Source: Trichoplax adhaerens (Eukaryota > Animalia > Placozoa). From it: a DNA stretch of 64,000 bases. The stretch covers positions 1,105,902-1,169,901 of the forward strand of contig NW_002060959.1 of the NCBI RefSeq assembly GCF_000150275.1, written 5' to 3'. Under the pieces are notes generated by a model, which saw only the letters and a list, made by a program, of their open reading frames with translations, made no database searches and had not been told where the DNA came from. How positions within the stretch are numbered: the stretch's first letter is position 1; each line of letters starts with the position of its first letter. Below are positions 18,925 through 44,588 of the stretch, piece by piece. The translations under genes and the position numbers were made by a program.

Positions 18925-19740
18925 ATATAATTGGGTCAACTTTTATATAACAGTCTATTTTATTGTACATTCTATAATCTAGTTACTACACATTAGTTGG
19001 GTAGACTTTTACAGTATATAACCATCTATTCTAGTGTAAATTGTACTGTATAATCTGGTTAGTACACATGAGTTGGGTAGATTTTCATATGACAGTCTAT
19101 TCTGTAATCGAGTTACTACACATTGGTTGAGTAGACATTTGTATGACAATTTATTCTAGTGTATATCCTATAATCTGGTTAGTGCACATTAGTTGGGTAG
19201 ACTTTTATAAACCATTTATTCTAGCATCTCTTGTACTGTATAACTAGGTTACTACACATTAGTTGGGTAGATATTTATATGACAGTCTATTCTAGTGTAC
19301 AGTTTATTGCATAATCTGGTTACTACACTTTTAGTTGGGTAGCTATTTGAGCGTATATGACAAGCTATTCTTGTGTATATTCTATAATCTAGTAACTATA
19401 CATTAATTGGGTAGACTGATATATGACAAACTAATTTAGTTACTCCACCTTAGTTGGGTAGACTTTTGTATGACAATCTATTGTATAATCTGGTTACTAC
19501 ACATTAGTTGGGTAGACTTTTATATGACAATCTAATCTAGCGTATATTGCATAATCTAGTACTATACATTAGTTGGGTAGATATTTATAGGACAGTCTAT
19601 TTTATCTATAATTAGGCTATTACACATTAATCGGATAGACGTTTATATGATAATCTATTCTTGCGTTTACGTATTCTATAATCTAGTTGCTACACATTCG
19701 TTGGACAGACTTTTGTATGACAATCTATAGTATTCTTGCG
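18925..19740. repeat. Minisatellite, ~13 degenerate copies of a ~50-75-bp unit, upstream of the NSD ATG (probably in a 5'-UTR intron)
   Basis: Recurring core TATAATCTGGTTACTACACATTAGTTGGGTAGACTTTTATATGACAGTCTATT. Confidence 0.9.
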
Positions 19741-21664: not shown

Positions 21665-22626
21665 AGGGAAATATGGCTGAAATCTCAGTTATTTTACTGT
21701 AAACTACTCTAAGATAGGATGATGTCGATCCTTTGCAAATCAAGAAATGAACAATGACCTTGTAGCAGAGTAGATTTTTGAATTGCATTCACAACTGCAG
21801 TGCAAGGCAAACTGTTTACTGGTCAAGGGACCCAATCCGTTGGCGACATGCTTATTTTACTGTAAGCTACTCTAAGATAGGATGATGTCGATCCTTTGCA
21901 AATCAAGAAATGAACAATGATCTTGTAGCAGAGTAGATTTTTGAATTGCGAGAAATATGGCTGAAACCTCAGTTATTTTACTGTTCACTACTCTAAGATA
22001 GGATAATGTCGATCATTTGCACATCAAGAAATGAACAATGATCTTGTAGCAGAGTAGATTTTTGAATTGCATCCACAACTGGAGTGCAAGGCAAACCGTT
22101 TACTGGTCAAGGGACCCAATCCGTTGGCGAGATGTTTATTTTACTGTAAGCTGCTCTAAGATAGGATGATGTCGATCCTTTGCAAATCAAGAAATGAACA
22201 ATGATCTTGTAGCAGAGTAGATTTTTGAATTGCGAGAAATATGGCTGAAACCTCAGTTATTTTACTGTTCACTACTCTAAGATAGGATAATGTCGATCCT
22301 TTGCAAATCAAGAAATGAACGATGACCTTGTAGCAGTGTAGATTTTTGAATTGCATCCACAACTGGAGTGCAAGACAAACTGTTTATTGGCCAAGGGCAT
22401 TCACAACTGGAGTGCAAGGCAAACTGTTTACTGGCCAAGGGACCCAATCCGTTGGCGACATGCTTATTTTACTGTAAGCTGCTCTAAGATAGGATGATGT
22501 CGATCCTTTGCAAATCAAGAAATGAACAATGATCTTGTAACAGAGTAGATTTTGGAATTGCATTCACAACTATAGTACAAGGCAAACTATTTACCGGCCA
22601 AGGGACCCAATCCGCTGGCGACATGC
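21665..22626. repeat. Composite tandem array with a 284-bp higher-order unit
   Basis: Core CTCTAAGATAGGATGATGTCGATCCTTTGCAAATCAAGAAATGAACAATGA at ~21706, 21869, 21990, 22153, 22274 and 22481 (spacings 163, 121, 163, 121, 207). Confidence 0.92.
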
Positions 22627-23399: not shown

Positions 23400-26300
23400 A
23401 TGTCTGTGGCGATGATCAGGTTGCCATGATCAAAATGAAATCTTCATCTTCCATTATGACGATAATAAATAAGAATAACAATAATCGAAAATAAATAATT
23501 GTCTGTCAATCTTGCAAGGCCTTGTGCCACTGGCCTACTGTAGATTCTCCATTCTGACGTTAATAGTGTATCGACGATAAATTGTGTATCGCCACTTAAT
23601 TGATGGATTCACTTTGTTTATGTATATATATAACTCTTTATCCTTGATTGATAGAACTGCTAGCCAGATTTGCAATTCACTAGAAGATATCTTAGCTAAA
23701 ACCTATGGTCCTGTAGGAATGGACGTCTTAATTGATGTCATGTCAACCAATGTTGTCGCTACCAATCATGGAAGTACCATTATCAATTCATTGCAGATAT
23801 CACACCCGGTAAGGGCACTATGCTATGCAATGGAATCGTCTTGTACTGTAGATTATTAAACAGCGTATACATTAAAGTGGATACTTGAAGGATATCATAC
23901 CGCCATACGCGTACATTAATATTACCACGTAATTATTAATGTGCTTCAAATTAATGTGGATACTTAAAGGAGATCATATCGGAATACAGTAATGTTAATT
24001 TTTATGTTACCTTATATATAGTTTAAATTAACGCGGATTCTGGAAGGAAATCATATCGGAATATATTGATGTAGTGATCTTTTATTTGTATGTGTTTTAA
24101 ATTAAGACAGATACTTGAAGGAGATCGTATCGCGGGATACATTATTATGATATGGTTATCTTTTAATTTCCCCTTTTATCATCTTTTATGTATTGTAAAT
24201 TATAGTAGATACTCGAAGGAGATCATATTGAGATACATAAATATTATTACCCATGTTATTATGTAGTTGTCATTCATGTATTTTAAATGGACGTGGATAC
24301 TTGACGGGGTTCATATCGGCATGCATTAATATTGTCATGTAGTTATTATTTATGTGTTTTAAATTAACGTGGATATTTACAGCAGATCATATCGGGCATA
24401 CATTAATAATGTTCTATAATTATCATTTATTTATATATTTTAAGTTAACGCGGATACTTGAAGGACATCGTATCGGGATACAATAATATTTATTATGTTT
24501 TCATCTTATATCTCGATGTTATAAATTAATGGGGACACTTAACTATTTTAAATTAATGGGAATACTTGAAGGAGATCATATCGGGGTGTATTAACATTAT
24601 TATGTAGTTATCTGATGTGTTTTAAATCAACGTAGATATTTGAAAGACACCATATCTGGATATATTAATATTATTATGCAGTTATCTTTTACGTATTTCA
24701 AATGAAAACAGATAGTCGTAAGTAATCATATAAGGATATACTAATACGGGAATATTATTATTTTAATCTTTTACCTGTTTAAGTTAACAGGGATGCCAAT
24801 AGGAAATCATATCGGGATACATTTATAATATTATTATGCTATCTTCTACGCGTTTCAAATTAATTGTGACACTTCAAGGGGGATCACATCAAGATCATTA
24901 ATATGTATTCTACAGTATAATCTTAACACGAATACTTGAAAGAGATCATGCTGTGGTAAAATAATACGTTACATATCATCTTTGCTTTTAAATTAGCACT
25001 AGCACTTCAAGGAGGTCATATCAAGATACCCAAATACATATACGTATTATATTCGTCCAGTATTATCACCCATTTAAAATCAATACTCATCGTGAAACAG
25101 TTCTTATCGAGATTTGTTACTATATATAGTCTATGATTATAAATTAATCCGAATACTTCAAAGAGACTATCCTAAGGTATATTAATATCATTTTCGATTC
25201 TTTTATCGTTTTATAAATAGGTAGGACAATTAATTACCAACTCGGTTAAGAAATTTTACGATAAAACAGGTAGAAGAGGAAAAATGCCCATTTGTAACTT
25301 GTCTAGTTATCCCTGTGCTATTGAGCGTCATGTATTGTTAAACTCAGTATTTTACTTATCTACTATTTTAATAGCAGGGTAAATTAAATTATATTTGTAA
25401 TTCTTAACCTAAACATTGTCACAGTATACGCAATTGATAGAATAATGTATAAGGAAGATGATAAAAGCATTTTGATAAATGATACATTTATTAGGTGATG
25501 GCTCAACCTCATTTGTATTGATAATGGCATCGATGATGAGACAGGTATGCTTGAATTAATGGTGGGAATAAATGCAAAAATTCATAATTTTTACCAAACC
25601 AAGTAATCAGATGTTATATATATAATATGCTACGCATGATACGCTAATTATTACTGGTTAAATCTATAAATCAAGGGTATATAGTGCACATTTTCTGCCT
25701 ATAAATTGTAAAGGTGATATGTATAGTAAGAGAATACTCGATCTATCTACTGCTCCTATTACGTAGATTTTGCGTCATGCGGAAAGTGAAGATACAAATA
25801 ATAAATGGCGTAGCGATCATAAGGAAACAATTATTAAATGTAAAACTATTTACTACTTATAAACCTTTCGATTACTACATTTCTAATCCCTCGATATATC
25901 CAATTTCTAAATGTATAATTATTGTCACATTGAATAAATTCTATTAGTATCTAGAGCTTTTAGGAAAGTCAATATTGATCTTGACCAGTATTTTACTCCC
26001 ATCTTACACAAAATGGTAAAAACATTAATCGCTTTGCTAAATATCGATTAGAAACGATAAAAATGTAAGTACTGAGTAGCATGATAAAACTTTTTTTTAT
26101 AAATATCTGATTATGTAGGCGACTTGTCTAACTGACTTCAATAAAAACTCTGTCATTGAGTCCCTTAATGGCATTATTACCACAGGTAAGATATTTGATA
26201 GTATTGCATGCTTGGCTTTTTCCGTATAATTATGCTTTAGTAATACGTATATTTTTAGCTTATTTCTTTATACAAATCGAAAGCATTTAAGGTGATTGTA

Positions 26301-28964
26301 GAGATGCAGAGTAGAATTTTAGTTTTTATCCTATTTATATTGGATTCTATTAAATGCCTCGATGATCATTTTAGTAATTTATAAGTTTGCAATTGCTATG
26401 ATTTTATCAACTCTTCTAGCTATGAATGGAAAGTTTGGATCCTTAGCTGTAGAAAAACTGACGAAAATTACCGTCGAGTTAATTCTGCGACATGCATGTA
26501 ATTTATCTACTTGTGAAGCTTTAAATAAGGTCATTATAAATTGGCCATCACCTGTCTTGCATCTTTTGTATACGAAGTTAAAATAGGATTAGAATATGAT
26601 ATCATTAATAATAAGAGCACACTCTAATTCTTAGACAATCAACAAACTTGTTGATGAATTTTATCTTATTGTTACTGAAATTCCTCAAATCCCGTTAAGT
26701 GAATCTTGCATATTAAATGGGTAATTTGAATTATTTTAAAGCTGTTATACGGTGTAAAATTACTGTCAGCTAAGATGATACATCCCTCTTTTATAGTATT
26801 TTACTTAGGTATAACTCCAAAGGAGTAAACGATAAACTTATTGCTGCTCTGTCAAATCAGAAATATCCTTCACTAATCCGAAAGTTTAGTTAAGAGGCTG
26901 AAATTTAAGCATTGGTCAAAAGCGAATTAAAAGCATTGAGATATTTTATCAATGATATTTTAAAATTAATAATTTTAATATCCTTAACTAATTGTTACCT
27001 TCAAGTTTACTTGCATAGCATTTAAATTAGACCAAAGTATAAGACAAGGAGAACATACATCTCTTAGGTACTTTCGAGATATTACAGTAAACAAGTATTA
27101 ACATGGATATTTATAAAAAATATTATATCTTATAATGGATGTTTCTTCCCGTGTTAGCTTCAGTAGATCTTCACAAGTAGATGGTGCTGTTGAATATCAG
27201 CAGAGCCGAATTAAGCGGTTTCTTAGCAAACTGCAAGATGAAAATGTCAAGTAAGATTAGAAAATCAACGGAAAAACTAACTTAGGCGGATAGCGATAAG
27301 AAACTTTATGTATTATAAATTTTCTTGAATCTGTTTATAATTGTCTCTGATAGTATAAACTTTTACATTAATAGATTAATTATTAGTACAGAGAGTGTAA
27401 CTGATGTTGCTGTATATCTTTGCAATCGAGCTGGAATTATTATCTTAGCAGTAAGTGAGGCCATTAATATATGTAGTAGTTAATGATTTATTATGTATAT
27501 GTAGGTATCGCTAAAATTTATCATATATTTCTGGTATAAACTATTTACTATTGCTTTCTGTATTATCAGAATGTAGCTGAGGAAGAAGCCAATCGAATAG
27601 GATATTACTGTAACCTTGGCATCATTTATGAAGTCGACATGGTTAGCAAATAAAATATGAAATCTATTTATAATCTACAATTGATTAAATTTGAATGAGT
27701 ATATTAAAAAATACCTATTTTTCATGCAAGGAGGAAACGCTAATATCGAAATTCACTGGTATTACCTCTTGCCAATTTATTACCAAGAGCACGCAACGGT
27801 AATAGTAGTAGTTAAATTTATAATAATAATTTTGACTTGTAGTCAAAATTGAATGATTTAAGTGAAATTAATTAGCGCATATATACTCTTACTTTACTTT
27901 CCAGGTATATTCAATTTATTCCACAACTTGCGGAATCAAACAGGTAATGATTACGGAAAAACTGCGTTCTACCACTCAATAATTTGCTAATATTAATTTA
28001 TTTTTATAATATCTTTTAAAAGGATGTATCATCTTTTGCTTTGCGGACTAGCCAAAGAACTATGCCATCAGTATCGAGCTGCAATCCATAATAGTCTAAA
28101 ATGTGTACTGATGTGGCTAGATCCACCGTATTGCTTGCGCACGTACCAACCATGTACCGTACCTGGTGGAGGTGCTACAGAATTTGCTCTCGCTAGAGCT
28201 CTGAAGGTGTTGCCGTCTAACGATAGCAATGATCCAGTTTATCGAAGTGCTTGTCAAATTCTTAGCGAGGTATGACGAATAATGATGCTTTACAACATAA
28301 AACTACGAATTCAACACCATAGCATTGCGCAACATTTCATATTAGCACTTTGATTTTATTTTTAAGAGTCTTCTAGCTATACCACGAACTCTTTATAACA
28401 ACTCAACTAACAGTACAGCGGGAGGCTTTATCCGGATTTTAAAGGTAGGGATATTATTATTGGGTTGTTTACGAGAGAATTTTTATGTAAATATGGCAAA
28501 GAATAATTCGGCTTTAACTGATATTAGGAAATAGATTCCGAATCAAGTGCACTAGGCAGTCATAATTGGAAAGGTATTAATCCATATACAGGTACATAAT
28601 TATTCCAGTTGTATTACTGTTCAGTGAATGTATTGGCTCTTTCTTGAGTTATTAACACTAAGATCTATTACTAACTTGGGTAGGCCATTTTGGCAGTAGC
28701 CACAATGTTATTGAACCAATGTATATTAGGTAATAAAATACTTGTTAATTTGGATATCATAAACATCATAAGAACGCATTTTCAGCATTACATGCTTACA
28801 AAATACATCGAAAGTTTATTACTTTTTTTGACTTGCTTATTTTTAGATACTACAGTGTCCGACAATGCTTACAAGTTATCACTCAGATTCTAAAAATAGA
28901 TAAAGTGATTTCTGCCATAGGCTGCGGAAATGGACGAAATAAGGCAGACGAACAAGATAATTAA
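23400..28964 (+). CDS. BBS10: BBS10-like chaperonin-like protein, many short exons
   Basis: Proposed first exon MSVAMIR (ATG 23400) splices to TASQICNSLEDILAKTYGPVGMDVLI...NHGSTIINSLQISHP|VGQLITNSVKKFYDKTG|DGSTSFVLI, which has the BBS10-type KTGDG ATP motif. Later segments: LLLCGLAKELCHQYRAAIHNSLK, VPGGGATEFAL, LLAIPRTLY, and last exon QCLQVITQILKIDKVI...EQDN* (stop 28962-28964). The start codon is inferred. Confidence 0.8.
23868..25190. repeat. Intronic degenerate minisatellite, ~16 copies at mostly 75-100-bp spacing, in BBS10 intron 2
   Basis: Recurring core TTAAATTAACGTGGATACTTGAAGGAGATCATATCGGGATACATTAATATT, separated by related AT-rich linkers. Confidence 0.9.
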
Positions 28965-29528
28965 GCTGCTATAATTGACAAAATTAAAAGCAATGATTAT
29001 TTTGCAAAGTAGGTCCACTTGTTCCTACTCATAGGGATATATCGGAATTTAAGTATATTAGAAAAGCAATACCAGATTGCAGAATACCGAACATTCTATC
29101 ATTTATCTTCGAATAACAATGATAATTAATATGCAGATAGAAATGAGAGTACTTTATAAAATGCGGAAAAAATGATTTTTTATGAAAGTGTAGGAACACG
29201 TACGACATCAAAATTTTAAAGGTGGAAGAACAATATACTGCATCAGTACGCATTGGATTGGAATTGTTGTTCAACATTCATCGTAACAGCGGTTAAATAT
29301 TAGCACCTAGAAGGTTGTTACTTTATAAAGACTTGCTCACTGTAAAAAAAATATTATTAACTTACACCGGAATTGATATTTTTATAAAAAATGCTTATGT
29401 ATGGTACTTCGCATACATAGGGCATACATACATACATAAATACATACATACTTACATACTTATAGGAAAATACATACAATAAAAAAATAAAGATTTGAAA
29501 TCCTATCGAGACCAAAGAAAATAAGAAA

Positions 29529-32500
29529 TCATTGCGTTAGCGGCAACGTCGATGCCGTAGATAAAGGGGATTGGTGATTGGGATAATCTTCGTTTCTGTA
29601 ATCTCCCAAACTATTCCCGTTCAGTAAACAGTTGATGATATTAAGTACGGCTACTCCAATGTCATCTACTGTAGCCAATCTGTCAGCAAGGGTCTCCCAA
29701 TCATCAAGGCAGACGTTTCGTGGAAGCTGAAGTATAAAAAATGAGTGCAATAGGGATTACATGAAATATTTTTATTACATCTGATAAATTGCATATTATA
29801 GACTAAGGTTAATTACTTCAAATATTTGCTGAGGAACATTAAATTTTCCTCCAGCAGCGCCACCAGTAACTTTAATTGGAATAACAGTATGATCATTCCA
29901 GCAAAATTGTTCCGCTTCATGTGCTGCACCAGGTCCTCCTTCAATTAATATACAAATACTAATTGCCTTGGATACAATAATCTCACGCTCTCGAACATTA
30001 TCTCCTGCAAATATTGTAGAACCAAATGGGACATCCATGAAGGTCTTGTCACTATTTTGCCTAGCTTGTAATGATCGATCCTAGAAGTTATAATACGTGA
30101 ACAATGGTCAATTTTATACGCTATATCTGTTAACATTGTGTTTAAACCAGGTGATATCGTAAGTATTACTGACCTGTTCGTCGCGTACTGGCAGCACATG
30201 GTAAACTAAAGGTTCCTTTTTGGACGTTATACGTTTATTATAAAAACTACGACCTAAGGGACAAAATATTAGCTTTAAGCTTATGTATTATTCGACATTA
30301 TCGTACGTATTTTCTTTAATTATAGTCAATCCTAACATGAAAGCTTTCCTTTACACACAACTTTACGAGAATTATTCTATGCATCTCTAAATATAATTGA
30401 ATATACTTTACCTAAAACATCACCAACTCCATAGAATCCTCCAGTTATAAGGCTTAAATTATCGAAATCAGCCAAGCATGCACCAATGGACCTTTTTTTT
30501 AAGACGATAGCATATCAATGAGTAAATGTAATGTCCAGTTCATGCTAACTTTCTTGTCATACTTGCAAATCGCCTCTGTGTTCTTGCTATAAAATTTTGT
30601 GCCGCCAGAGATGTATACACAGGGATCGCTTCGTGGTAAAGTTTCCCTTAAAAGATAGCTCTACAAAGCCGTTGGTTAATTAAAATTTTAGGTAAAAACA
30701 ATCTCTTTACTTTAAATACAAAAGCATTGACTAGTAAAATATTGTAATTGAAGATATTAATACCTTAAGAGAGATGTCAGCATCATTTAACAGATTATCT
30801 TCCCGATTAAACGTCTGTCGTACGCGAGCTACTAGTGTCTGTTTATAGTCTTTTCGTTGAACGTCCTAATGGCAATTGGTCATTAGAGTATAAAGGCTAA
30901 GCTACGGTTTGAAGACTTTTAAAAATCCGATATTGTATGCAAAAGTAATGTTAACTAAACAACCTCGAGAGGAGCAGTTCCAATTAGCATCGACAGCCAA
31001 CCTGGCATGGCAAATTCTTCAGCTTTTAAAGGAATAAATCTTTTCCTATGTTCACAATAGTATACCTGATGTAGCAATTTGAGAATGGTGATTAAATACC
31101 AAATTGGATACCAAATAAACCCTTCAAATTTAGATTAACTGCAAAAGAATATACAAGATCTACGCACCTGCTGTTGACATAAACGTGAAGTAGCAAATGC
31201 TTGCGACAACAAAAAGATGACCATACAAGCTTCATCAGTAATTCTCTGAAATTCAATTCTCATTCGTTTTGTTGCTTTTTCGGTTAATTCTAGTTGTATG
31301 TTGATAATAAATATATATAAATATGAATTATTGCAATGATCTAAGCACTGAAACTTTAGACAGTATTACAGATTGCTCTAAATGGACTGTTTTTAATATT
31401 TGTCGATGAAGGGTAACGATTTTATTTCTATATCATTGTATAACATATTTCTATTGCTAGCATCAGACCAGTCTTTTGGCTTATTTTCGCCCTTTTGTTA
31501 CTGCGGAGCTTTTTCTTGGCGGGTTCATTGACAGTCTTGTATAAATCCGCCATGAGTTCACTGGTCAATACTATTTCGTAACCTTCTTCTTCTAAACAAT
31601 TTTTGATTTCATTAGCCTGCAAATTGAAGAAGCGAATTAATTTACGCTTTTTCTTATGGTATGATTTTGTAGTGCTATAGTTACATGCAGTTAAACATGC
31701 TTAGATTATACAGGTTAAAATACCTATTACATTCAATAGCAAAAATAGAGATCTATCCTTACAATATTGTCCTGAGTAGGGTGACAGCTAAGAATGATAA
31801 GTGGTTTTCCATCACGAGGCTCCTGGGATGCCATAGGGGATGATGCATTTCCAAACAATTGTAAAGGGCAACTGCGTATCATCGAAATTCTCTTCTGTAG
31901 TTGCGTATCTGAACTTTCGTCATCGAACGTTTCTGTACTATCGGATAGCGATATAGATCGACGGCATAATTCGCCTATTTGTTGAGCAACTCCAACTACA
32001 TACACTTTATCCCAATATGAAATGTCATCTTTATTACCATCTAGTAATCAATCGGAATTCATCATTTTGTTGTCAATTAATTCATGCTACAAGAAAAACA
32101 TAATGGAAGATTTGAAAAGAAACCTTTTAAAATATTTTCCGTAGTTTTCCATGGAACAAACTGTGTTGTTGCAAATTGAATAGCTAGACACCTATAGTTT
32201 AGAAATGAAGTGTAAAGCGAGGAAACAAATAATGTATTAGACGATTATGTGGCATAACTTACAGATAGCTGTTAGTTATAATGCTGCATGCAATTTAATT
32301 TTATTTCACAGAGTGTATGAATTTTTCAAACTTACGCGGGAGGCCAATCACTTAGAAAATTAACAGGCACGACATATTTTCCTAAAACATCCGCTAGCTT
32401 GATCTAATTTATCCAAACACCAAAATAATTTGTGAAGTTGGTTTGTTATCTCAATATTTTTATGTTACGTTTCACAGTAGCATGATAAACGTAAAAGAAA

Positions 32501-35348
32501 TTAGTATTATATTCCTAGAATTGAATTTGCTTACTTCTCTATTTGTCCATTGCGTTTTACCATACCTTGGTGTGACAAGTGGTACAAATACCTCACATGA
32601 ACTAACAGCATCGTTAAGGGAATCTTGCCAATCAACACCGCACTTTATTTCATGAACATCCTGTGAAATAGGATAGTTAAAAGTAGTAATGGTTAAGTAA
32701 GAAAATTAATTTAGCGAAGCTAGGAGTGAACTGTAAATTAGTACCAACATCAAACAGTAACATACAGGCACTATAACCTACATCATTACACGTACTAGGA
32801 TAGGTGATCACTACATACGTATGCGTATTAACAATCTTTCACACGTATTTACCAGATAAACGCTAAAACCAAGCTTTTCAAACTCTTCTTTCAAACTTAA
32901 AGCATGCAGTGCGGCTTCAGCTCTAACATAACTAATAAGTATTTCCTTTTCACTGTTGTCTTTTACGGCAATTGCTTTAGATCTATTTTGTAAATTTGCT
33001 ACTGCCGGATGGAACAGTCTATGAGATCTAATACTATCTGCTGCTGATGTAAGGGCATTGAAATCTTTATTTTTAATCCTATGATATTGAAAAAGAATGA
33101 AGAAATTTATCGGTAAGCCGTAGAGCTGGCCTCTATCTAGCCTTCGTGATCAAATATATTGTGCTACTGTACTGTACTAATAGTATACTGATAGCTTACG
33201 GTGTATCATTTGAGTGAGGAATGGCGACTGCAACAGAGCCTGTGAAACGAAATAGTTAACGTTATTTAGATTTATTTATCTCGTCGTCATCTAAATAGTT
33301 GATATAAGAGCTCTACCGAGAGTACTAAGTGTAAAAAATATAGACTTGCTAAAGATGAAACCTTTGCGTTCGAGAACTAGCATGATACCATAAATAAAAA
33401 ATAAAATAAGGAAAATTTGCAGTATCCTCAATGACTTTTACTATTAAAGGTATAACTATCTCATCCTCAATGATTTTTAATTTCGTATAAAATTAACGTT
33501 AATAAATCACTATCTGATAAGTTAAAAATTGATTGCCCTATCGAATTGATCACAGCAAATGCCATATCCATTACGTCTTATATATTCTAGGTCTATATAA
33601 AAAATGCCTATCATATCCATGAGAATGCTACTATTCTTATTATCGTGATTATTTAAGTAGAGTATTCATTGCCTAGCTTTCTCTGTATTTTTACCCAGCT
33701 TACTATTATCGGGCGCTTGAAATTGGATATAAATTATTTGCTGCGTTATAATATCAGCAATAGTTAGTCTTTCTTCTTGAAAGGTGAAAACAGGCCAGCA
33801 ATTATGATCCAAGAAAGTAAACGCTGCCAGCTTGGCACCTTTTAGCTATTATAAAGTATGTGATAATAGGCTAAGTGAGATATCATATACTGGCAATGGT
33901 TATCAAATTATTATCATTAAGGTTGTCTACGGTGATGATTGAAATTAAGTTACGGTGTATTAACAACTTTAACCTGTTGGTTAATTTCACGTCGAGTTTC
34001 AGACAATAGCAGCGTAATTTTAGCAAAGATGAAACCAAGCGGTTTTTTATCGGTTGACATAATTCCAATTCTGCATTCATCAACTATAAAAAAGGATGAA
34101 AATACCGATGGGTAATTGATTCATATTCTATACGCGTATATTGACTATCTTACTGTACAGTATAGGGCTGAAATTGATGGCATTAGGGTACTATAACAGA
34201 TGACACGCGAGCTAAAGATTCACTGTTTGAGAACTTTTGTATCTTTTGCTTACCTGCAGTTTGAATAGTAACTAGGTTATCATGATCTACCACATGGCTA
34301 GCTCGAATGCACATTTCTTGATTTGAATTCACAGGCCAACTATAGCATTGCAATTAATTATTGGATAATAATTGAAATATCTTAGTGATAGGTGACTAGT
34401 CCATATTTTTAGCTGCAATTTCATCCTTATAATTTATATAATAAATGTGGTTTTAAGTTAATCATGGCATCATCAAATCAGGTATAAGCAGTTGCATTCG
34501 TCAAAATTTTTAATAATATCATTAATCAACAATCACTACTATAATAAACTTCTTCTACTTCTAGTTACGAATAAACATACTGTACTGTAGATACACTACG
34601 TATCCTGCGTTGCATGTATCAACAAAGTAGATAGGCATACTACGTCTAACCAATACAGTATAAGATATCAAGGGAGTGTCAGAAGATGGAATAGTAGGCA
34701 TCGAAAAGGAAAATTGAAAAGAATATTTCTTTTCAGCCTACTCTACATCAGCGATTGCTGCTACTCCTTTCAATGGGCTGGCCATGATGTCGGTTGTTAT
34801 TGGTACACTTGGAAAAGAGTGTCTATTGCAAGTTTGCAAAGTATTACAATGCGCCATGTCATCTGGACGCGATTAAGACACCAGTGAGCACGACACAAAG
34901 CTCAACTTGCATTTATCAACATGGTTTGATGAGCTTGTGTAATATGGCACTTGTGCTAACTCATCATCATAACCATATTATGATGCATTTAAATGCTAAT
35001 ACAGTATTCATTACACCATCAATGCATCCATTTCATTCTCCACTGATGCGTGTACCGTATGAACAATTAACGACTAGTGGTGATCCTTCCCACTTACCCC
35101 TTCCGAGTGAGAAAACGAAAAGATTGAGGTAAATTATCCAATTGATTGGCTATGCATAGGCGAAGTTGCTGAATGCTTGCATCCGATATATTATCGCATA
35201 CCACCACTCCTAGAACATGATAAACCGTGGAAGTATCTCGATGATCCAGCTGATGATGGAATGGCTTATTGGCAATAAAGCGAATTCCGATGACATTACT
35301 CGATTGTCGTGGATTAAGATAATTCGGGCTGCTTCGTATACTTTGCAT
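29529..35348 (-). CDS. Uncharacterised ~865-aa protein: two ubiquitin-like/SPATA1-like repeats, two TIR domains and a C-terminal SLOG domain; 19 exons
   Basis: Hand-built exons, all with GT-AG introns and consistent phases, total 2598 nt: 35348-35098, 34339-34254, 34083-33974, 33845-33695, 33239-33200, 33078-32853, 32660-32535, 32403-32336, 32191-32124, 32040-31763, 31616-31469, 31289-31168, 31065-30964, 30865-30764, 30660-30563, 30491-30412, 30253-30174, 30080-29817, 29726-29529. TIR1: EILISYVRAEAALHALSLKEEFEKLGFSVYLDVHEIKCGVDWQDSLNDAVSSCEVFVPLVTPRYGKTQWTNREIKLADVLGKYVVPV. TIR2: LIILSCHPTQDNIANEIKNCLEEEGYEIV...EACMVIFLLSQAFATSRLCQQQVYYCEHRKRFIPL. SLOG: CVYISGG...IGACLA...LITGGFYGVG...REREII...ILIEGGPGAAHEA...TVIPIKVTGGAA. 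Confidence 0.85.
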
Positions 35349-36602
35349 TACTGTATTCAATTAGCTAGGGCTACAAGCTGAAGAGAGATTATTCAATAGA
35401 GATGAGAATGTCGGCCAAGTTGTTCAACTAGAAAGAAGAGCTGGACAGGTAGAGCAAGTTGCAAATTTTATTAAGTCAACAAGCGCAGCCGAACTTGGGC
35501 ATGTCTGCAAGTATTTGCTCAGGTCTTGCTCGATGTCTACAGTACTGACCACTGTAATAAAATACGGTAGGGTTAGGATGGCCCGGTCAAAAGCCGCTGG
35601 CTACAGTACGATCCTACGGTGCATACTACTGTAACGCGGGCGATGCAACTCATACTGAACGAGCCAATGGCGAGGCTGGCCACTGGCCATGGCTGTACTG
35701 ACTGACTGACTGACTGACAGGCCAATCCACAGCCAGCAAATTGCTAAATGAATACGACTGGAGGCTGACGATGGCCGACTGTCTATTTGGATAGGAGATT
35801 ATGGCAACTAGCCAAGGATGCCTAAGATACTCCACATACCAGTAATTCTATTTCTTTGTGAAACTATTGCTAGAGCTCTTTTAGGCAGAGGGGGAAAAAA
35901 CATAGCGATAGGATATAGGAAGTCCCTTTTTGCCTGGAGAAATCCTGTACAGTAGTCCATGACGATCTGCACTGTTTACGTCGATCCTTTTCCATTCCAC
36001 TGCTTGACTTATACAGTACTTGAAAATAGAAGGTACAGTAATATACACGTCAGTACTAGTATTACTGTCCTACAGCATCATGCCATCGGTGAATTTACTG
36101 TAGGGAAGGCACTATTGAATCTACTGTAGGAGTCTATCATGCATGGGACGAAAATGGAGAACTTTGCTAATTCCCCCAAATTCCAACTTACTCAAGTCTG
36201 TCTGTACCATACATCGCGCATGTGCACTGGACAGTACTTGCAACAGAGTCAATCTTGTACTTTCCTTTACTGCCAGGACTCGACTGTCGATGATTGCTGG
36301 CGATTAGTTGCTAGTCAAATCCCAAATATCCAAATATCAATCTAAAATTGCCAATTCACTACTTGGAAGAGTATTAGTAGGGGCCAATTTTTGCATCGTC
36401 GTCTTCTTGTGCTATATTGTACTGTGTATCAACGGACTTGTAAGAAACCCCTGACTAGATCGACGCGTAGATTCAACTCGGTATTAGCAAGCTGTCTAGA
36501 TCGCAGGTCCAACTGCAATTGTGCAACGTTAAGACCAAATTAATCCATGATTGCATCACTCCAAATTAAATTCCTCTTCCTCGCGCTCTTCAATTCCCCA
36601 AG

Positions 36603-38145
36603 ATGGCAGATATCACATTCTCAGCTGTAGCCAAATTACAAATACAAGAAATTATTCGACTTGAATTTGAAATTCAATCTATTATTCAACAAATTAAAGA
36701 TAGCCAAGGACCTTTTGAAATACTCAATAGATTGCATAGCCAGGTGAAAGATTGCATGAAGATCCTAGAGGAAGACGTCAATGTAAGGGGATAATGGATA
36801 AAACTGGAATGTCAGTCTTTCGATATCGGTCTTGACAGTGAAATGATAGTATTTTTACTTGACTATTTGAAGCATAATAATGTATGTTATGATGATGAAA
36901 ATTGGCTTGCTTGCATGATTAACCAATTGATTATACAAATGTGTTCTAGTAAACAGCTTGATCATCATACTTTTCACTGCATTTTAGAAATTAAAGATAT
37001 TGGCCCATGAAGAGGATAAAGACAGCCAAACACAAGAAATCTTGCAAGTAGCAGGCCGCCACCAGCAACAACTGGAAAGGTAACAATACGTATACTGTAC
37101 ATCATTCCTTACTACTAAACTGTAGATTTTACAACACGGTCGTAGCCAAATCATACACGCGTAGACGGACAGTACTTCTCGTCTATAATAATCTCCTGTT
37201 TCACTCTGTGTCTATAATACTGGCCAAAGCTCTCAAAAATCTCTCAGGCGTGCCTTGCTCACCGCTAAAACTAACATCGAAAATACCGATAGACAAGTAC
37301 TTATCGAAGGCGGTTCTTCCCAGTTAAGACAAAGGTAATACAGTACTCTACTTTCGTAGTCATACTACAATAAGATTGACACTAGTCATGAATATGGTAT
37401 AAATTAGATTGTATAATATGGTATAAAATGATTTCATATTGCTTGAAGTATCAACCTTTCGATAGCTCATGTGTATACGCTTCACAGATATAGCTATACA
37501 ATGTTCCTATACTTGAAATGATTGATTTATTAATTTACAGTCAATATCAAAAATTGTAGTAATGTAAAGAGTGGATAAATTCAAAAATACTTTAAAAATC
37601 TTCTCCCTATTTTTAATTAATGCTGTGCACATAAATATGAAATATGTCTGGTATCGAATAACTAGGGTACAAACTAAAAAAGAAGCAGTCAAATTAGCTA
37701 GCGAAGTAACGAATGAACTAATACACATCAATCAAATGATGGCGGAACAAGTTAAACAGAGCGAACAGAATATGCAGCTTTTAGGTATAATGACATCATT
37801 CAGTTACTTACCGTACGAAGCTACGGGCAATTTTTACCCCATTGGCTTTGCTAGAACATAGTTTTGTATTTCCAACAAATAGCAGTGTCGATTGGGTTTG
37901 ATCGATAAACAGTTGTGAGTTAACGTAAGCTTGATATGTTTATGTACTCGTATACAGCAACTTCATCCATGGCCCTCACCGATACTGGAGAAGAGTTGAA
38001 AAATCAGTCTGGAGTTATTACATCTAGTAATAAGCTGCTGACAAAATATGGCCGACGTGAATTAACAGACACTGTCGTTATTTTTTTTGGTGTCTTGGTC
38101 TTTCTCGCCACAGTCTTATATATACTCAAAAAGAGAATGTTTTAA
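36603..38145 (+). CDS. BNIP1: Vesicle transport protein SEC20/BNIP1 (ER SNARE), 5 exons
   Basis: Exons approx. 36603-36782, 36988-37079, 37230-37334, 37666-37784 and 37959-38145. Segments QEIIRLEFEIQSIIQQI, SLRRALLTAK and the SNARE helix ASEVTNELIHINQMMAEQVKQSEQNMQLL. C-terminus KLLTKYGRRELTDTVVIFFGVLVFLATVLYILKKRMF matches the Sec20 signature plus TM anchor. Confidence 0.92.
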
Positions 38146-41100
38146 TTGATCATTATTCGAGCTTATATCAACATTTTATTATACTGTATCCAAGATACTA
38201 ATGAATTATTTTTCAAAATCTCTATATAAGAAATAGCAATGGTAGTCTATACATTGTTCAATTCTGTGAAGTGATTATTCAAATAAATACTATGAAATTT
38301 TTTGTTTTTCCATCTCGGTGACGTTGCCAATTGCAAATAATTCATCTCCATATATATCATATTCCTATTCACAAATTATCTAGCATTGCACATTGATTCA
38401 TAAAAAAATTACTTTACCATAAACCATGCTAGTATGGCTGATATGTAAAATCTGAAACTTATAAAGTAGATGACACTGAGGTACAAAATTTATAGTGATG
38501 TCTTTTCGTACCGAACACGTGTAATACAATGTGGAACAAGTTTTATTCTATTACATTAATATCTTTATAGTAATAAATTGTGAATTTTAACTTTTGCTTA
38601 CATACTCGCATATATCAATTTAATTCAAACTTTTTTGGGGAATTAAATCACTGTATGATACTGTAGATAGAATAATGTTGTCATTGTATTTGTAATACAC
38701 TTGATTTGCTTCTCGGCAATAATTTGGCTTCATGGCAAACTTGAATAAAATAGTTTCTTCCTTCGTGGAATCGGTAATCGATATAAATATATATATATTC
38801 CTATACTTTGAATGCTTAAAAGTATTTAATAGCGTTATACAGTAAGTACAACAAGTGATAGACGCCATTTATGAATTTAATTAACAGGTATCGGTTATAA
38901 ATGAGTGAAAGGATTTGCAGTCCTAATTACTATCTGTTGCTGTATAGCAACCTTCATTCGATTTTACTTTACACTATGCAATTAATTCAGCTAATCATTT
39001 ATGCCTCAGCAAGCTCACGAGCCCATCTAGTACCAAATTTCGTTTTGATTTTAAGTCTAAGGTACTCCGATCTATTGCACGCCATATGATACAACAACTG
39101 ATTGAAGGTAAATTAAAGATTTTATATTTTTAAGTTGATAAGAACGTTCTCTTTTCACGAATAGAATAAAAATCCAAATGAGCCATGAAGCATTAGCTCT
39201 ATTTTCGTCGATATGTCATTCGCTAGAATGAGGTAGCTTACTAGGGGCTAGAGTCGCCAGCATAACTTCTTTGCAAGTGATCGTTAAATTTTATTATTTA
39301 TAATTAAAGGGTAAATACAAATAAAGCCTCATGTACACATTATACAGAACTATAACGTACATTGTCTAGACAAGAAACATTTATAGTAATAAGATATGCT
39401 TTCATTGGTGTCATATTACGATTAAGCTTACAACAAAAGAAGACCAAATCCACCTCGTAGTTTGTTATTAATTAGAATTACTCATCTAATATTGATTTCT
39501 GTACTTTTATGTATTATTGTACACTTTTCGTTTTGCTTTTGGACCAAGGTGTAAAACTTTGCCTGTTAGAGCTAGACTTCGGCTACTTTTTATTTCATAA
39601 GGGAAATCCTTAGACATGGTGATCTTCCTTGATTGGTTAATGATAAGTCGATTAGTTTTTTTCAGTAACATGATGGAATTTTTAGCGGTAAGGTACAGTA
39701 GTGAATGGAATATGTATAAAATGGATAGAGTAAGAAGAAATTGATGGTGTTCACCAATACTGGTATACTCGATACAGAGCATTTACAACGATTGGTTGAG
39801 AGACTCTATCACTAAAGTACTCCTTTGCTTGATGTATATCAGTAATGATGAAATATTGGATATCGGATGGATGGGTAACTTTAATCGTATCGACTCTACC
39901 TATTGATTTTAATTTTCAGTTAACTGAAAAAAAATTAATTTGTAAAGGAGAGTGTTATGGCAATATTGCGCTGTGGTGTAGATACTGTGTAATGCCATAC
40001 ACGCGTATACCAGCGTTTTTGGGTATTCTTATTATCAATAATAGCTAAAAGCGTATGGAAAATAATCAAGTCTTAATTTGATCACTGTGTGATGTGGTAA
40101 TAGATGGAAGTTATTCGATTATTTTAGCGTCAAGGTGGTAAACATCAACTAGGATCACTTTTGAATGTGTTTATTGAATTATATGTTGTGATAATAATGC
40201 AGTATAAATATTGCATCCATTTATCATAGTACGCCATGGTGGTACCATCGAATTTGAATAATCAGCATGAACCTCTGTTAAATGAGCACATTATCGTAAA
40301 CCGTCAGTAAAGCGACGGGAGTTTGCACTAGTAAATATTTAAGCACATCGATGATTCCTTTGCAAGAGCGCTATAAAAAGTTTTAGTTATCCTTAGAGAG
40401 GGCTGGGAAAAAGCTGCAATTTGCTTTAGTTCAATACGTGACACAGTCCTTTTTTTAGGCATCAACTGCTCACCTTGACATACGCGTATGCAGAAGTATT
40501 GCACGAATTGATATTTGGTCTTTAACAACAAGTAGAGTATAGTCAAATTCAGCTATTCGATGTTTGAACAGTAGTTTATGGCGATATCATCTGGTAGTGG
40601 CCTTAGCAGTATCATATTTTTTGAATATATTTCATCAAGTTGTACCTTGTAGTTATGTTCATTTTAAGATTTGCTCTATTTTTAATGAACTCCAATTTGG
40701 GATTTGTGGATTGAGAACCTTGGCAGTTCAGAAATTTCTTCATGACATTCGTGAATTCAATCAAATGAAAGAGAGGCAGTCACTGTAGCTCAATATTGAC
40801 ATAGTCAGGCTAGCGGATTGACTATTTGAAATCTTTCTCCGAGTATGTAAGTAAAATAAATAACGTTTGCATGGTATGCGAATTTCTACAATTATACCAG
40901 TGATGGATGATTTCGTTTCAACTGTGCAAACGTGTATTGAAAAATTGGTCAGTTACTACGATACATTGGTCGTGATGGTAGTAACATTTCCTTGAGCTTT
41001 TATTATGATAGTATTGCGCTTGTAGATAATAAATAAAACCTAGTGATCATCATTGTGATTTAGGCACATTGCTTTACCATGCATATTCATGGGCAAGTAA

Positions 41101-43427: not shown

Positions 43428-44588
43428 AGCGTCCAGTCCAGTAGTGTCACTAGACTACAGTCCAGAAGACTACAGTGTACAGTACAACGAGCTGGATACT
43501 GTACAGTGTACAGTACTGTACTGGAAGGAAACGTCGGTGACAACGAGTGACGACCTTCCAGGTTCAGCCCATCGGCCAGCCGTGGGTGTCTCTGGTGTTG
43601 TCAAATACTCTACAGTATAGCGTCCAGTAGACTACAGTGTACAGTACAACGAACTGGATACAGTACTGTACAGTACTGGAACTGGAAAGAAACGTCGGTG
43701 ACGACGAGTGACCACCATCGAGGTTCAGCCCATCGCCAGCCGTGGGTATGGCGTCTCTGGTGTTGTCAAATACTCTACAGTATAGCGTCCAGTAGACTAC
43801 AGTGTACAGTACAACGAACTGGATACAGTACTGTACAGTACTGTCAAGAAACGTCAGTGACGACGAGTGACCACCATCGAGGTTCAGCCCATCGCCAGCC
43901 GTGGGTATGGCGTCTCTGGTGTTGTCAAATACTCTACAGTATAGCGTCCAGTAGACTACAGTGTACAGTACAACGAACTGGATACAGTACTGTACAGTAC
44001 TGTCAAGAAACGTCAGTGACGACGAGTGACCACCATCGAGGTTCAGCCCATCGCCAGCCGTGGGTATGGCGTCTCTGGTGTTGTCAAATACTCTACAGTA
44101 TAGCGTCCAGTAGACTACAGTGTACAGTACAACGAACTGGATACAGTACTGTACTGTCAAGAAACGTCAGTGACGATGAGTGACCACCATCGAGGTTCAA
44201 CCCATCGCCAGCCGTGGGTAGGGCCGTGGGTGTCTCTGGACTGTTATCAAATACTGTATAGCGTCCAGTAGACTACAGTACAGTGTACAGTGTACAGTAC
44301 AACGAAGTGGATACTGTACTGCACTGGAAAGAAACGTCAGTGACGACGAGTGACCACCATCGAGGTTCAACCCATCGCCAGCCGTGGGTAGGGCCGTGGG
44401 TGTCTCTGGACTGTTGTCAAATACTGTATAGCGTCCAGTAGACTACAGTACAGTGTACAGTGTACAGTACAACGAAGTGGATACTGTACTGCACTGGAAA
44501 GAAACGTCAGTGACGACGAGTGACCACCATCGAGGTTCAACCCATCGCCAGCCGTGGGTAGGGCCGTGGGTGTCTCTGGTGTTGTCCA
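43428..44588. repeat. Tandem array of ~7 units (154-170 bp) immediately upstream of the hexokinase gene
   Basis: AGGTTCA(G/A)CCCATCG anchor at 43560, 43721, 43880, 44039, 44193, 44363 and 44533 (spacings 161, 159, 159, 154, 170, 170). Confidence 0.95.

Follow-up and report, generated by a model that had tools for sequence, protein, structure and literature searches.

Whether an animal can hold, in one protein chain, both an enzyme that makes an ADP-ribose-derived signal and a domain of the kind that senses one is the question raised by a gene of the placozoan Trichoplax adhaerens. The gene lies on the minus strand of a 64,000-nucleotide stretch of contig NW_002060959.1 (positions 1,105,902 to 1,169,901), here called the window. 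TIR-made ADP-ribose-derived signals and their SLOG readers form the core of bacterial Thoeris immunity, and the original prediction, made from the DNA letters and their open reading frames (ORFs), had read the gene as a TIR-TIR-SLOG fusion joining writer and reader in a Thoeris-like module. The locus is found here to encode an 865-residue protein with two predicted ubiquitin-like (UBL) domains, a catalytic-type TIR domain (TIR1), a probable pseudo-TIR (TIR2) and a C-terminal SLOG domain. The best explanation for these five modules, and one held with about even confidence, is a cytosolic TIR NAD+ cyclase regulated by its SLOG domain.

On the minus strand between 29.5 and 35.4 kb, the stop-to-stop ORF fragments contain recognizable pieces of coding sequence. 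Sequences from four public runs (X14, which is RNA-seq, X9, X4 and X1) were compared with positions 29529-35348; X14 and X9 contain spliced contigs, and X4 and X1 contain unspliced, DNA-like sequence. Read on the minus strand from 35348 to 29529, the gene has 19 exons totaling 2598 nucleotides. This length corresponds to 865 codons plus the stop codon that ends at 29529, and every exon, kept in its running phase, is free of internal stops. Fifteen of the 18 introns are joints in spliced X14 and/or X9 contigs, all 15 of them GT..AG on the minus strand after the cuts are shifted. The intron between exons 17 and 18 was placed by a 17-nucleotide loose end at 30082, which is the end of exon 17, and those on either side of exon 5 by arithmetic on a 618-nucleotide X9 contig, by AG/GT sites, and by X9 depth in two bins, which fits a 40-nucleotide micro-exon at 33239-33200. 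Overlapping contigs join exons 1-2, 3-4, 4/5 to 10, 10-12 and 12-15, and the joints continue to exon 19; X9 contigs run from UBL2 through TIR1 to the start of TIR2 (exons 4/5-10) and from TIR2 into SLOG (exons 12-15), with an X14 contig covering exons 10-12. Every neighboring exon pair is therefore bridged, and a single transcript carries both the TIR exons and those of the SLOG domain. The claim of a single intron-rich animal gene for both TIRs and the SLOG domain thus stands, as do the predicted exon number, length, coordinates and strand, and each motif quoted for it (ISY, GFSVYLD, GVDWQD, WTNRE, YISGG, LITGG, RERE, EGGPGA and VIPI..TGGAA) is present in the translation.

Additional exons within the 758-nucleotide first intron were considered and rejected, since splicing from 34339 to 35098 in the RNA passes over the ORF fragments that lie there (34564-34872). 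In one X14 contig, position 34291 is also connected to 35348 with a change of strand, which is most likely an assembly fold-back and not a feature of the transcript.

A phmmer search with exon 18, the largest SLOG exon, matched 244 proteins, the top match being T. adhaerens XP_002116792.1 (TRIADDRAFT_60787; UniProt B3S8Y4), a "TIR domain-containing protein" of 734 residues. An 865-residue protein from Trichoplax sp. H2 (RDD43502.1, here P0151) falls in the same 90% cluster, is collinear on all 19 exons, and differs from the window product at 3 residues. The 734-residue public model is mis-built: it is without exons 1 and 19 and continues past the donor site of exon 18 into intronic sequence (...VINLSL at 29799). 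A length of 865 residues, in place of the public 734, is supported by the RNA contigs and by the model from sp. H2. That the public model is so short, terminating within an intron, is the one point in favor of separate TIR and SLOG transcripts or of a pseudogene. This possibility is vanishingly small, and was already refuted by the spliced contig chain: contigs from two runs overlap through all exons, the 865 codons are all open, an independent sp. H2 model gives the same 865 residues, and collinear homologues are found in other phyla. The coding exons differ from those of sp. H2 at 12 of 2598 nucleotides, within a 22-kb stretch spanning the gene that is 97.7% identical, and the division of these differences into nine synonymous and three non-synonymous, together with homologues in about nine phyla, indicates that the gene is under purifying selection. 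It is single copy in the Trichoplax genome.

For the domain scans, the window product was searched exon by exon and full-length scores were obtained on P0151 as a proxy. TIR1 (about residues 259-375) matches Pfam TIR_2 (PF13676) with an E value of 3e-20 and 73 bits against a cut-off of 28 (P0151 residues 259-363), and exon 7 alone, at 31.5 bits, is above the cut-off. It also matches the PADLOC ThsB profile (E 2e-12), and its best NCBIfam match is ThcB4 from type III Thoeris, a system of several TIR proteins with a SLOG effector (E 3e-18, but at 65.8 bits far below the equivalog cut-off of 220). Among solved structures, the SARM1 TIR comes closest in sequence (E 1.4e-9), with bacterial AbTir next. 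The W-T-N-R-E of TIR1 has the same spacing as W-V-H-K-E in SARM1, so that Glu330 aligns with the catalytic glutamate of the SARM1 W-x-x-x-E motif, and this residue is near-invariant across 37 homologues. Profile scores and Glu330 together mark TIR1 as a SARM1/ThsB-like TIR of the predicted catalytic type, in keeping with the writer role first proposed for it.

The second TIR-like region (about residues 455-590) is more degenerate. It scores an E value of 2.6e-5 against TIR_2, just below the cut-off (P0151 residues 400-600), and its profile matches the TIR domains of TLRs and MyD88 in the PDB. The catalytic position is occupied by Gln558, in a C-x-Q-Q motif that is shared by most homologues, and is followed by an invariant Y-Y-C-E-x-R-K that includes Tyr561 and Arg565. 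TIR2 is thus probably a non-catalytic pseudo-TIR, and of the two TIR_2-type domains originally described only TIR1 scores above the cut-off, the TIR motifs quoted for the pair being all from TIR1. A phase-0 intron directly follows the catalytic-position codon in both TIRs (exon 7 ends in WTNRE and exon 12 in LCQQQ), and this common position points to an old internal duplication of the TIR unit.

The C-terminal domain (about residues 637-840) passes the Pfam LDcluster4 cut-off (PF18306) only marginally, with 27.0 bits against 26.3 for residues 590-865; the full-length protein scores 24.2 bits, and homologues reach 32.6 bits. STALD (PF18185), the ThsA-type SLOG family, aligns at positions 18-209 of 211 without passing its cut-off (22.0 bits against 24, E 1.2e-4), and the PADLOC ThsA-STALD profile gives an E value of 4e-4. 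SLOG, STALD and LDcluster4 were reportedly all defined by Burroughs et al. in 2015. No match to the LOG family (PF03641) was obtained in P0151, nor was a SIR2, transmembrane, Macro or other ThsA-type effector domain detected there in the Pfam scan. One other LDcluster4 exon above the cut-off is present in the genome (C1387:137772-137915, minus strand, 31.3 bits), in a second, unrelated SLOG-type gene.

Structure prediction was more decisive with regard to fold. An AlphaFold2 (AF2) model built on a 36-sequence alignment has a pLDDT of 92.5 and a pTM of 0.87, and Foldseek places it with probability 1.0 and E values of about 1e-6 on TM1055 (1rcu), on the N-termini of TRPM8, TRPM2, TRPM5 and TRPM4, and on the BcThsA SLOG domain with 3'cADPR (7uxs). 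Z scores from VIA-align are 17.2 for 1rcu, 17.1 for 7uxs and 8bto, 16.9 for the Moco carrier protein, 16.7 for PpnN, 14-15.7 for LOG (types I and II), 14.2 for TRPM2, and 13-14 for DprA. The modeled C-terminal fold is unambiguously SLOG, near ThsA, TRPM and LOG as had been expected, although the top structural rows are tied and fold alone therefore picks no SLOG subfamily. The closer association with ThsA that was initially envisaged is not supported, the domain scoring better against LDcluster4 than against STALD and no SIR2 domain being detected.

Several SLOG motifs (ISGG, TGGFYGVG and EGGPGAAHE) are conserved among the homologues. At single positions, Gly645 is conserved in 100%, Gly677 and Gly680 in over 90%, and His704 in 92%; Gln720 and Gly760 are also conserved. 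Arg744 is found in 35 of 36 homologues (97%) and Glu767 in 27 of 36 (75%), with leucine in six. The ThsA pocket includes Ser288, Phe357, Arg371 and Glu403 (Ka et al. 2020), and judging from motif order, the candidate pocket residues of the Trichoplax domain would fall at these four positions and at the PGGxGTxxE motif of LOG.

The first 215 residues match no family in Pfam, NCBIfam or PADLOC, and gave no match in the PDB profile search. In the family alignment they contain an internal repeat, with F-x-F-L-x-x-x-G-W-P...Q-E occurring twice, and the AF2 model (pLDDT 87) has two beta-beta-alpha-beta-beta (beta-grasp) units. In Foldseek, USP7 UBL1-2, ISG15, FAT10 and di-ubiquitin match this model at probability 1.0 and E values of 1e-5 to 1e-4; the TM scores, at 0.25-0.39, are low owing to differences in domain orientation, and shape matches in the ESM Atlas agree. 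The N-terminus is accordingly modeled as tandem ubiquitin-like domains, an assignment that, with no Pfam match, is at the level of fold. These two domains had been missed when the architecture was first described, although its TIR-TIR-SLOG portion was right.

The family and the activity of its TIR are already on record. Hurieva et al. (bioRxiv, 22 April 2026, 10.64898/2026.04.20.719644) surveyed about 71,000 eukaryotic TIR proteins, and their tables list both this gene and its architecture, so that the supposition of an unrecognized protein, which had allowed for earlier mention, no longer applies. The second TIR of the Trichoplax gene (B3S8Y4_2) is given in Table S3 with GLN at the catalytic position, and Table S2 includes a TIR(Glu)-TIR(His)-SLOG protein from Macrostomum (A0A267GNU3) and TIR(Glu)...SLOG proteins from two tardigrades (e.g., A0A1D1V4B3). 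The legend of Figure 3A places SLOG among the domains of proteins with a cADPR-making TIR, cADPR being cyclic ADP-ribose. Most relevant is row 129 of Table S4, in which the first TIR of an 857-residue protein from Patiria miniata (A0A914B4U3_1, TIR 254-417, Glu327) is listed as active after 4 h with cADPR "yes"; the tabulated sequence carries the family motifs WTNRE and CLAIQFATTQF, and mutation of the catalytic glutamate is reported to have abolished production in all active TIRs. The Patiria, Macrostomum and tardigrade proteins listed there resemble the Trichoplax protein as members of the same family, with glutamate in TIR1, another residue in TIR2, and a C-terminal SLOG. The preprint differs from the present analysis in treating only isolated TIR domains, and in the sections and tables considered here neither the fusion to SLOG nor the pseudo-TIR nor the N-terminal part is taken up. 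What is new here is the RNA-supported 865-residue model, the di-UBL N-terminus, and the intron position shared by the two TIRs.

A survey of the architecture, which the original prediction had called for, identified 159 full-length homologues at E <= 1e-10, extending from sponges to echinoderms. Taxa and identities were taken from the best 120 of the 159, most of which are 32-45% identical. They include homoscleromorph sponges (Corticium and Oscarella), placozoans, hemichordates, all echinoderm classes sampled, nemerteans, molluscs, annelids, a priapulid and many chelicerates. The tables of Hurieva et al. (2026) extend this range to a flatworm and to tardigrades. Vertebrate, insect, nematode and cnidarian sequences were not among these best 120, and no search aimed at absence was made. 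The Patiria protein (P0178) is 43% identical to P0151 over 846 residues and collinear in its UBL-UBL-TIR-TIR-SLOG arrangement, and on sequence grounds the Trichoplax gene belongs to this animal family (the Patiria A0A914B4U3 group). In the blood clam Tegillarca granosa, two family members carry consecutive locus tags on the same contig (KUTeg_005650 and KUTeg_005651; P0204 and P0255); one copy has only the SLOG domain in precomputed Pfam annotations, which may reflect a local duplication with divergence of the TIRs.

Beyond animals, more distant SLOG relatives occur in dinoflagellate and other protist transcripts, in EF-hand, Macro or tandem-SLOG contexts. A homologue search with the SLOG alignment returned animal fragments only. 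A shape search of the ESM Atlas gave the cluster to which the family itself belongs, with 244 members that are mostly from molluscs, and an 81-member bacterial cluster of TIR+LDcluster4 fusions of about 392 residues, mainly from cyanobacteria; further matches were to bacterial LDcluster4 proteins, Cap17-like_N+LDcluster4 proteins and SIR2+STALD proteins (ThsA). The bacterial fusions share with the Trichoplax protein the combination of a TIR and an LDcluster4-type SLOG in one chain, with a TM score of 0.66 to the SLOG model, but are about 390 residues long, with one TIR and no UBL domains.

Comparison with type I Thoeris reveals similarities in both halves of the system. The predicted logic of the Trichoplax protein has the same two parts, a TIR that would make a cyclic ADP-ribose and a SLOG fold that would bind one; TIR1 matches the ThsB profile, the STALD portion of ThsA is matched by the SLOG domain, and the SLOG model superposes on BcThsA-SLOG with a root-mean-square deviation of 2.9 over 172 residues. 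However, the Trichoplax protein is the product of a single intron-rich animal gene, whereas Thoeris is a prokaryotic two-gene anti-phage operon. The animal protein has an additional pseudo-TIR and two UBL domains, no detected SIR2 or membrane effector, and a STALD score under the Pfam cut-off. The product reported in the preprint table for the orthologous TIR1 is canonical cADPR, in contrast to the 3'cADPR of Thoeris, and the 2'/3'-glycocyclic ADP-ribose products at first considered for the Trichoplax protein find no echo there. The protein is Thoeris-like in its logic and not a member of Thoeris.

Two animal systems offer further parallels. SARM1, an ARM-SAM-SAM-TIR NADase, shares its W-x-x-x-E motif with TIR1 and, in concept, places a TIR NADase under an attached region that senses metabolites and oligomerizes. 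Its ARM and SAM modules are unrelated to SLOG, pseudo-TIR or UBL domains, however, and it mainly depletes NAD+, while in the tables of Hurieva et al. (2026) the Patiria orthologue is entered as positive for cADPR with no depletion of NAD+. The MHR1/2 regions of TRPM2 and other TRPM channels have a SLOG fold, which in TRPM2 binds ADP-ribose, but they belong to the Pfam family LSDAT_euk and not to LDcluster4, and no channel is present in the Trichoplax TIR-TIR-SLOG protein. Trichoplax has its own LSDAT_euk loci elsewhere in the genome: at least eight contain TRPM-type SLOG exons above the Pfam cut-off, including C1399:924577-926271, C1409:2333754-2335683 and C1407:1884243-1886413, with others on C1414, C1406 and C1411. 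These are several TRPM-like genes, which could read ADP-ribose-type signals.

TIR enzymes need two TIR domains to form an active site, the SLOG domains of ThsA, TRPM2 and PpnN are ligand-controlled switches, and a TIR fused to a nucleotide sensor, as in TIR-STING and TIR-SAVED, is normally an effector. Taken together, these three points favor a SLOG-regulated TIR NAD+ cyclase, and the bacterial single-chain TIR+LDcluster4 fusions fit the same pattern of TIR effectors attached to nucleotide sensors. Under such a mechanism, the two UBL domains would probably dock the protein onto partners. TIR1 would be the enzyme, cleaving NAD+ via Glu330 and making cADPR, as may be expected from the conserved glutamate and the core identity of about 75% with the Patiria orthologue. 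TIR2, as an old internal duplicate that has lost its glutamate while keeping an invariant YYCE-x-RK surface, would probably be a non-catalytic partner completing the active site across two TIR domains; the need for two TIRs makes a Gln-containing TIR2 plausible as a fixed partner. The SLOG domain would be a regulatory or oligomerizing module. On the model of ThsA, TRPM2 and PpnN, its predicted pocket, formed by the glycine loops together with Arg744 and Glu767, would bind a nucleotide, whether of the ADP-ribose type or another. The bound ligand would turn the assembly and activity of the TIRs on or off, and could be either the product of TIR1 itself, giving feedback, or a signal of other origin. 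As output one would expect cADPR and/or local consumption of NAD+, with the TRPM-type channel genes of the same genome as plausible, if speculative, downstream readers.

A number of observations weigh against this reading. Enzymology is known only for the isolated orthologue TIR, over-expressed in E. coli and reported in a preprint (Hurieva et al. 2026), and the roles of the full-length protein and of SLOG are predicted. Pairing of TIR1 with TIR2 has no support from complex prediction, which returned a score of 0.00 and hence no verdict for or against it. The SLOG assignment by Pfam is marginal and STALD falls short, and when the SLOG sequence profile was searched against the PDB, ThsA was not retrieved, the matches being designed repeat proteins on the C-terminal helix along with TRPM2 and 1rcu at E values of 0.4-0.7. 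LDcluster4 is a broad family of TIGR00725/LOG-like proteins, with members in 13 of the 14 prokaryote genomes used as controls, and membership consequently says little about ligand. The mapping onto ThsA Ser288, Arg371 and Glu403 comes from motif order and aligned ranges, not from residue-level superposition, and the replacement of Glu767 by leucine in some homologues further complicates the proposed pocket. Finally, a single-copy, slowly evolving gene with housekeeping flanks is more like a core signaling enzyme than an arms-race immune gene.

The alternatives to a SLOG-regulated cyclase differ chiefly in the role that they give to the SLOG domain. It could instead close a loop, TIR1 writing a cyclic ADP-ribose signal that is read by the SLOG of the same protein or of a neighboring copy, with output via TIR2 and UBL scaffolding or by cooperative self-activation. 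That would be a complete Thoeris-like module, and it is tentatively entertained here as rather unlikely. Thoeris of types I and III is likewise made up of a TIR half and a SLOG half, TIR1 fits the profiles of both ThsB and ThcB4, the SLOG domain matches ThsA by structural model and by PADLOC profile, and the Patiria TIR is listed as making cADPR, all of which would be in line with such a loop. On the other hand, fusion removes the separation of sensing and response on which Thoeris relies, no pathogen-sensing or effector domain was detected in P0151, and the SLOG domain, whose binding is predicted, is nearer to LDcluster4 than to STALD. The product, as reported in the preprint, is canonical cADPR, and ThsA-type SLOG domains read 3'cADPR.

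If the SLOG domain were itself an enzyme, a nucleotide N-glycosidase akin to LOG or PpnN, the protein would be a two-step metabolic or signal-processing enzyme, trimming the product of TIR1, for example, or making a ribose-phosphate derivative. The x-G-G-x-G-x-x-x-E spacing of EGGPGAAHE fits the PGGxGTxxE of LOG, the near-invariant Arg744 stands at the place of the LOG catalytic arginine, and PpnN and the LOG enzymes are among the structural neighbors. However, Glu767 would be expected to be invariant if it were catalytic, non-enzymatic binders (the ThsA SLOG domain, the Moco carrier protein and TRPM) are equally close, and TIGR00725 is matched only very weakly (E 0.014), so that this reading is judged improbable. 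A little more improbable still is a pure scaffold, with both TIRs as adaptors in a TLR/IL-1R-like pathway, cADPR in E. coli as a by-product, and a SLOG domain that only oligomerizes. Kamm et al. (2019), who counted 16 TIR proteins in sp. H2, suggested that those of the conserved invertebrate class act as adaptors or regulators, which was the older view of such proteins, and UBL domains and pseudo-TIRs are typical interaction modules. Such a role sits poorly with a catalytic glutamate and W-x-x-x-E motif that are near-invariant in 37 homologues from a family spanning sponges to echinoderms, with conserved SLOG ligand-pocket motifs, and with the catalytic activity tabulated for the Patiria TIR.

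The coordinates and evidence for each exon are collected in the table below. By synteny with sp. H2, the genes flanking the locus are a Sec20 family gene and a TCP-1/Cpn60 chaperonin subunit, at about 36600-38150 and about 23400-29000, with hexokinase from about 44.5 kb onward; these neighbors are housekeeping genes and not an immune gene cluster. Adjoining the hexokinase-syntenic region is a tandem array at 43460-44564, with 6.8 copies of a 159-bp unit (91% matches), to which the sp. H2 locus aligns at several offsets, and its copy number may differ between lineages. A second tandem repeat lies at 21668-22397 (2.6 copies of a 284-bp unit, 95% matches, with an inner 121-bp sub-repeat), and weaker arrays of 65-76 bp are found at 19112-19728 and 24260-24490.

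Table. Exons of the Trichoplax UBL-UBL-TIR-TIR-SLOG gene, in window positions, with the part of the protein that each encodes or is predicted to encode
Exon	Position	Strand	Encoded part	Basis and remarks
1	35098..35348	-	ATG at 35348; residues 1-83 plus 2 nucleotides; most of UBL1 (FRFLTRKGWP motif)	Closely preceded by an in-frame stop; X14 and X9 contigs show splicing to exon 2
2	34254..34339	-	End of UBL1	Joints 34339 to 35098 and 34083 to 34254, GT..AG
3	33974..34083	-	Start of UBL2	Joints in X14 and X9
4	33695..33845	-	UBL2 (FTFLDHNCWPV..QEE motif)	Joint 33845 to 33974; donor CTGG/GTAAAA picked by frame and P0151 mapping
5	33200..33239	-	40-nucleotide linker micro-exon	Inferred from X9 binned depth, contig arithmetic, AG/GT and frame; 100% match to P0151 residues 200-213
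6	32853..33078	-	Linker and TIR1 start (ILISYV..GFSVYL)	X9 contig 32852-33077; joint 32659 to 32852
7	32535..32660	-	TIR1 core (GVDWQD...TQWTNRE); last codon 32537-32535 is catalytic Glu330	Pfam TIR_2 E 2.8e-7 on exon alone
8	32336..32403	-	TIR1 (KLADVLGKYVVPVNF..WPP)	X9 joints; invariant K, P and WPP columns
9	32124..32191	-	TIR1 end (CLAIQFATTQF)	X9 joints; conserved columns
10	31763..32040	-	Low-complexity linker and TIR2 first strand (KPLIILSCHP)	X14 and X9 contigs; family alignment
11	31469..31616	-	TIR2 helix A and variable insert	X14 contig across exons 10-11-12
12	31168..31289	-	TIR2 core (ACMVIFLLSQAFATSRLCQQQ); last codon 31170-31168 is Gln558 at the catalytic position	
13	30964..31065	-	TIR2 (VYYCEHRKRFIPLK), invariant Tyr561 and Arg565	X9 contig across exons 12-13-14-15
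14	30764..30865	-	Linker helix into SLOG	X9 contig; helix 2-19 of SLOG model
15	30563..30660	-	SLOG strand 1 and Gly loop (CVYISGGT), invariant Gly645	
16	30412..30491	-	SLOG strand 2 and Gly-rich loop (LITGGFYGVG)	Joints in X14 and X9
17	30174..30253	-	SLOG strand 3 (VYHVLP), His704	Joint 30251 to 30410; loose end 30082
18	29817..30080	-	SLOG core (RQN, VPFG, NVRERE, LIEGGPGAAHEAE, VIPIKVTGGAAGG); Arg744 codon 29987-29985, Glu767 codon 29918-29916	LDcluster4 E 0.0075 on exon alone
19	29529..29726	-	C-terminal SLOG helices and disordered tail; stop at 29529	X9 joint 29726 to 29817; helix 206-226 of SLOG model

The survey of Hurieva et al. (2026), in the parts drawn on here, raises the question of what reads TIR-made cADPR in animals, and a conserved protein in which a TIR of the cADPR-making type stands beside a SLOG fold is an obvious candidate in the search for such a reader. 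The pair of a catalytic TIR and a pseudo-TIR likewise provides a natural case for studying how TIR active sites are assembled, and the 865-residue model, its domain boundaries, and the candidate residues Gly645, Gly677, Gly680, His704, Arg744 and Glu767 make experiments straightforward. The wide but patchy spread of the family, from sponges to echinoderms, bears on the inheritance and loss of immune and NAD+ signaling in animals. In its most ambitious form, which is doubtful at present, the interpretation would be of a self-contained, switch-like cADPR node that predates the split between sponges, placozoans and bilaterians: TIR1 would write the signal, the SLOG of the same or a neighboring copy would read it and drive assembly, the pseudo-TIR would be an obligatory partner, and the output would pass to Ca2+ or TRPM-type channels or to innate immunity. 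If true, this would be the first complete Thoeris-type writer-reader circuit in animals, and one apparently lost in vertebrates and insects.

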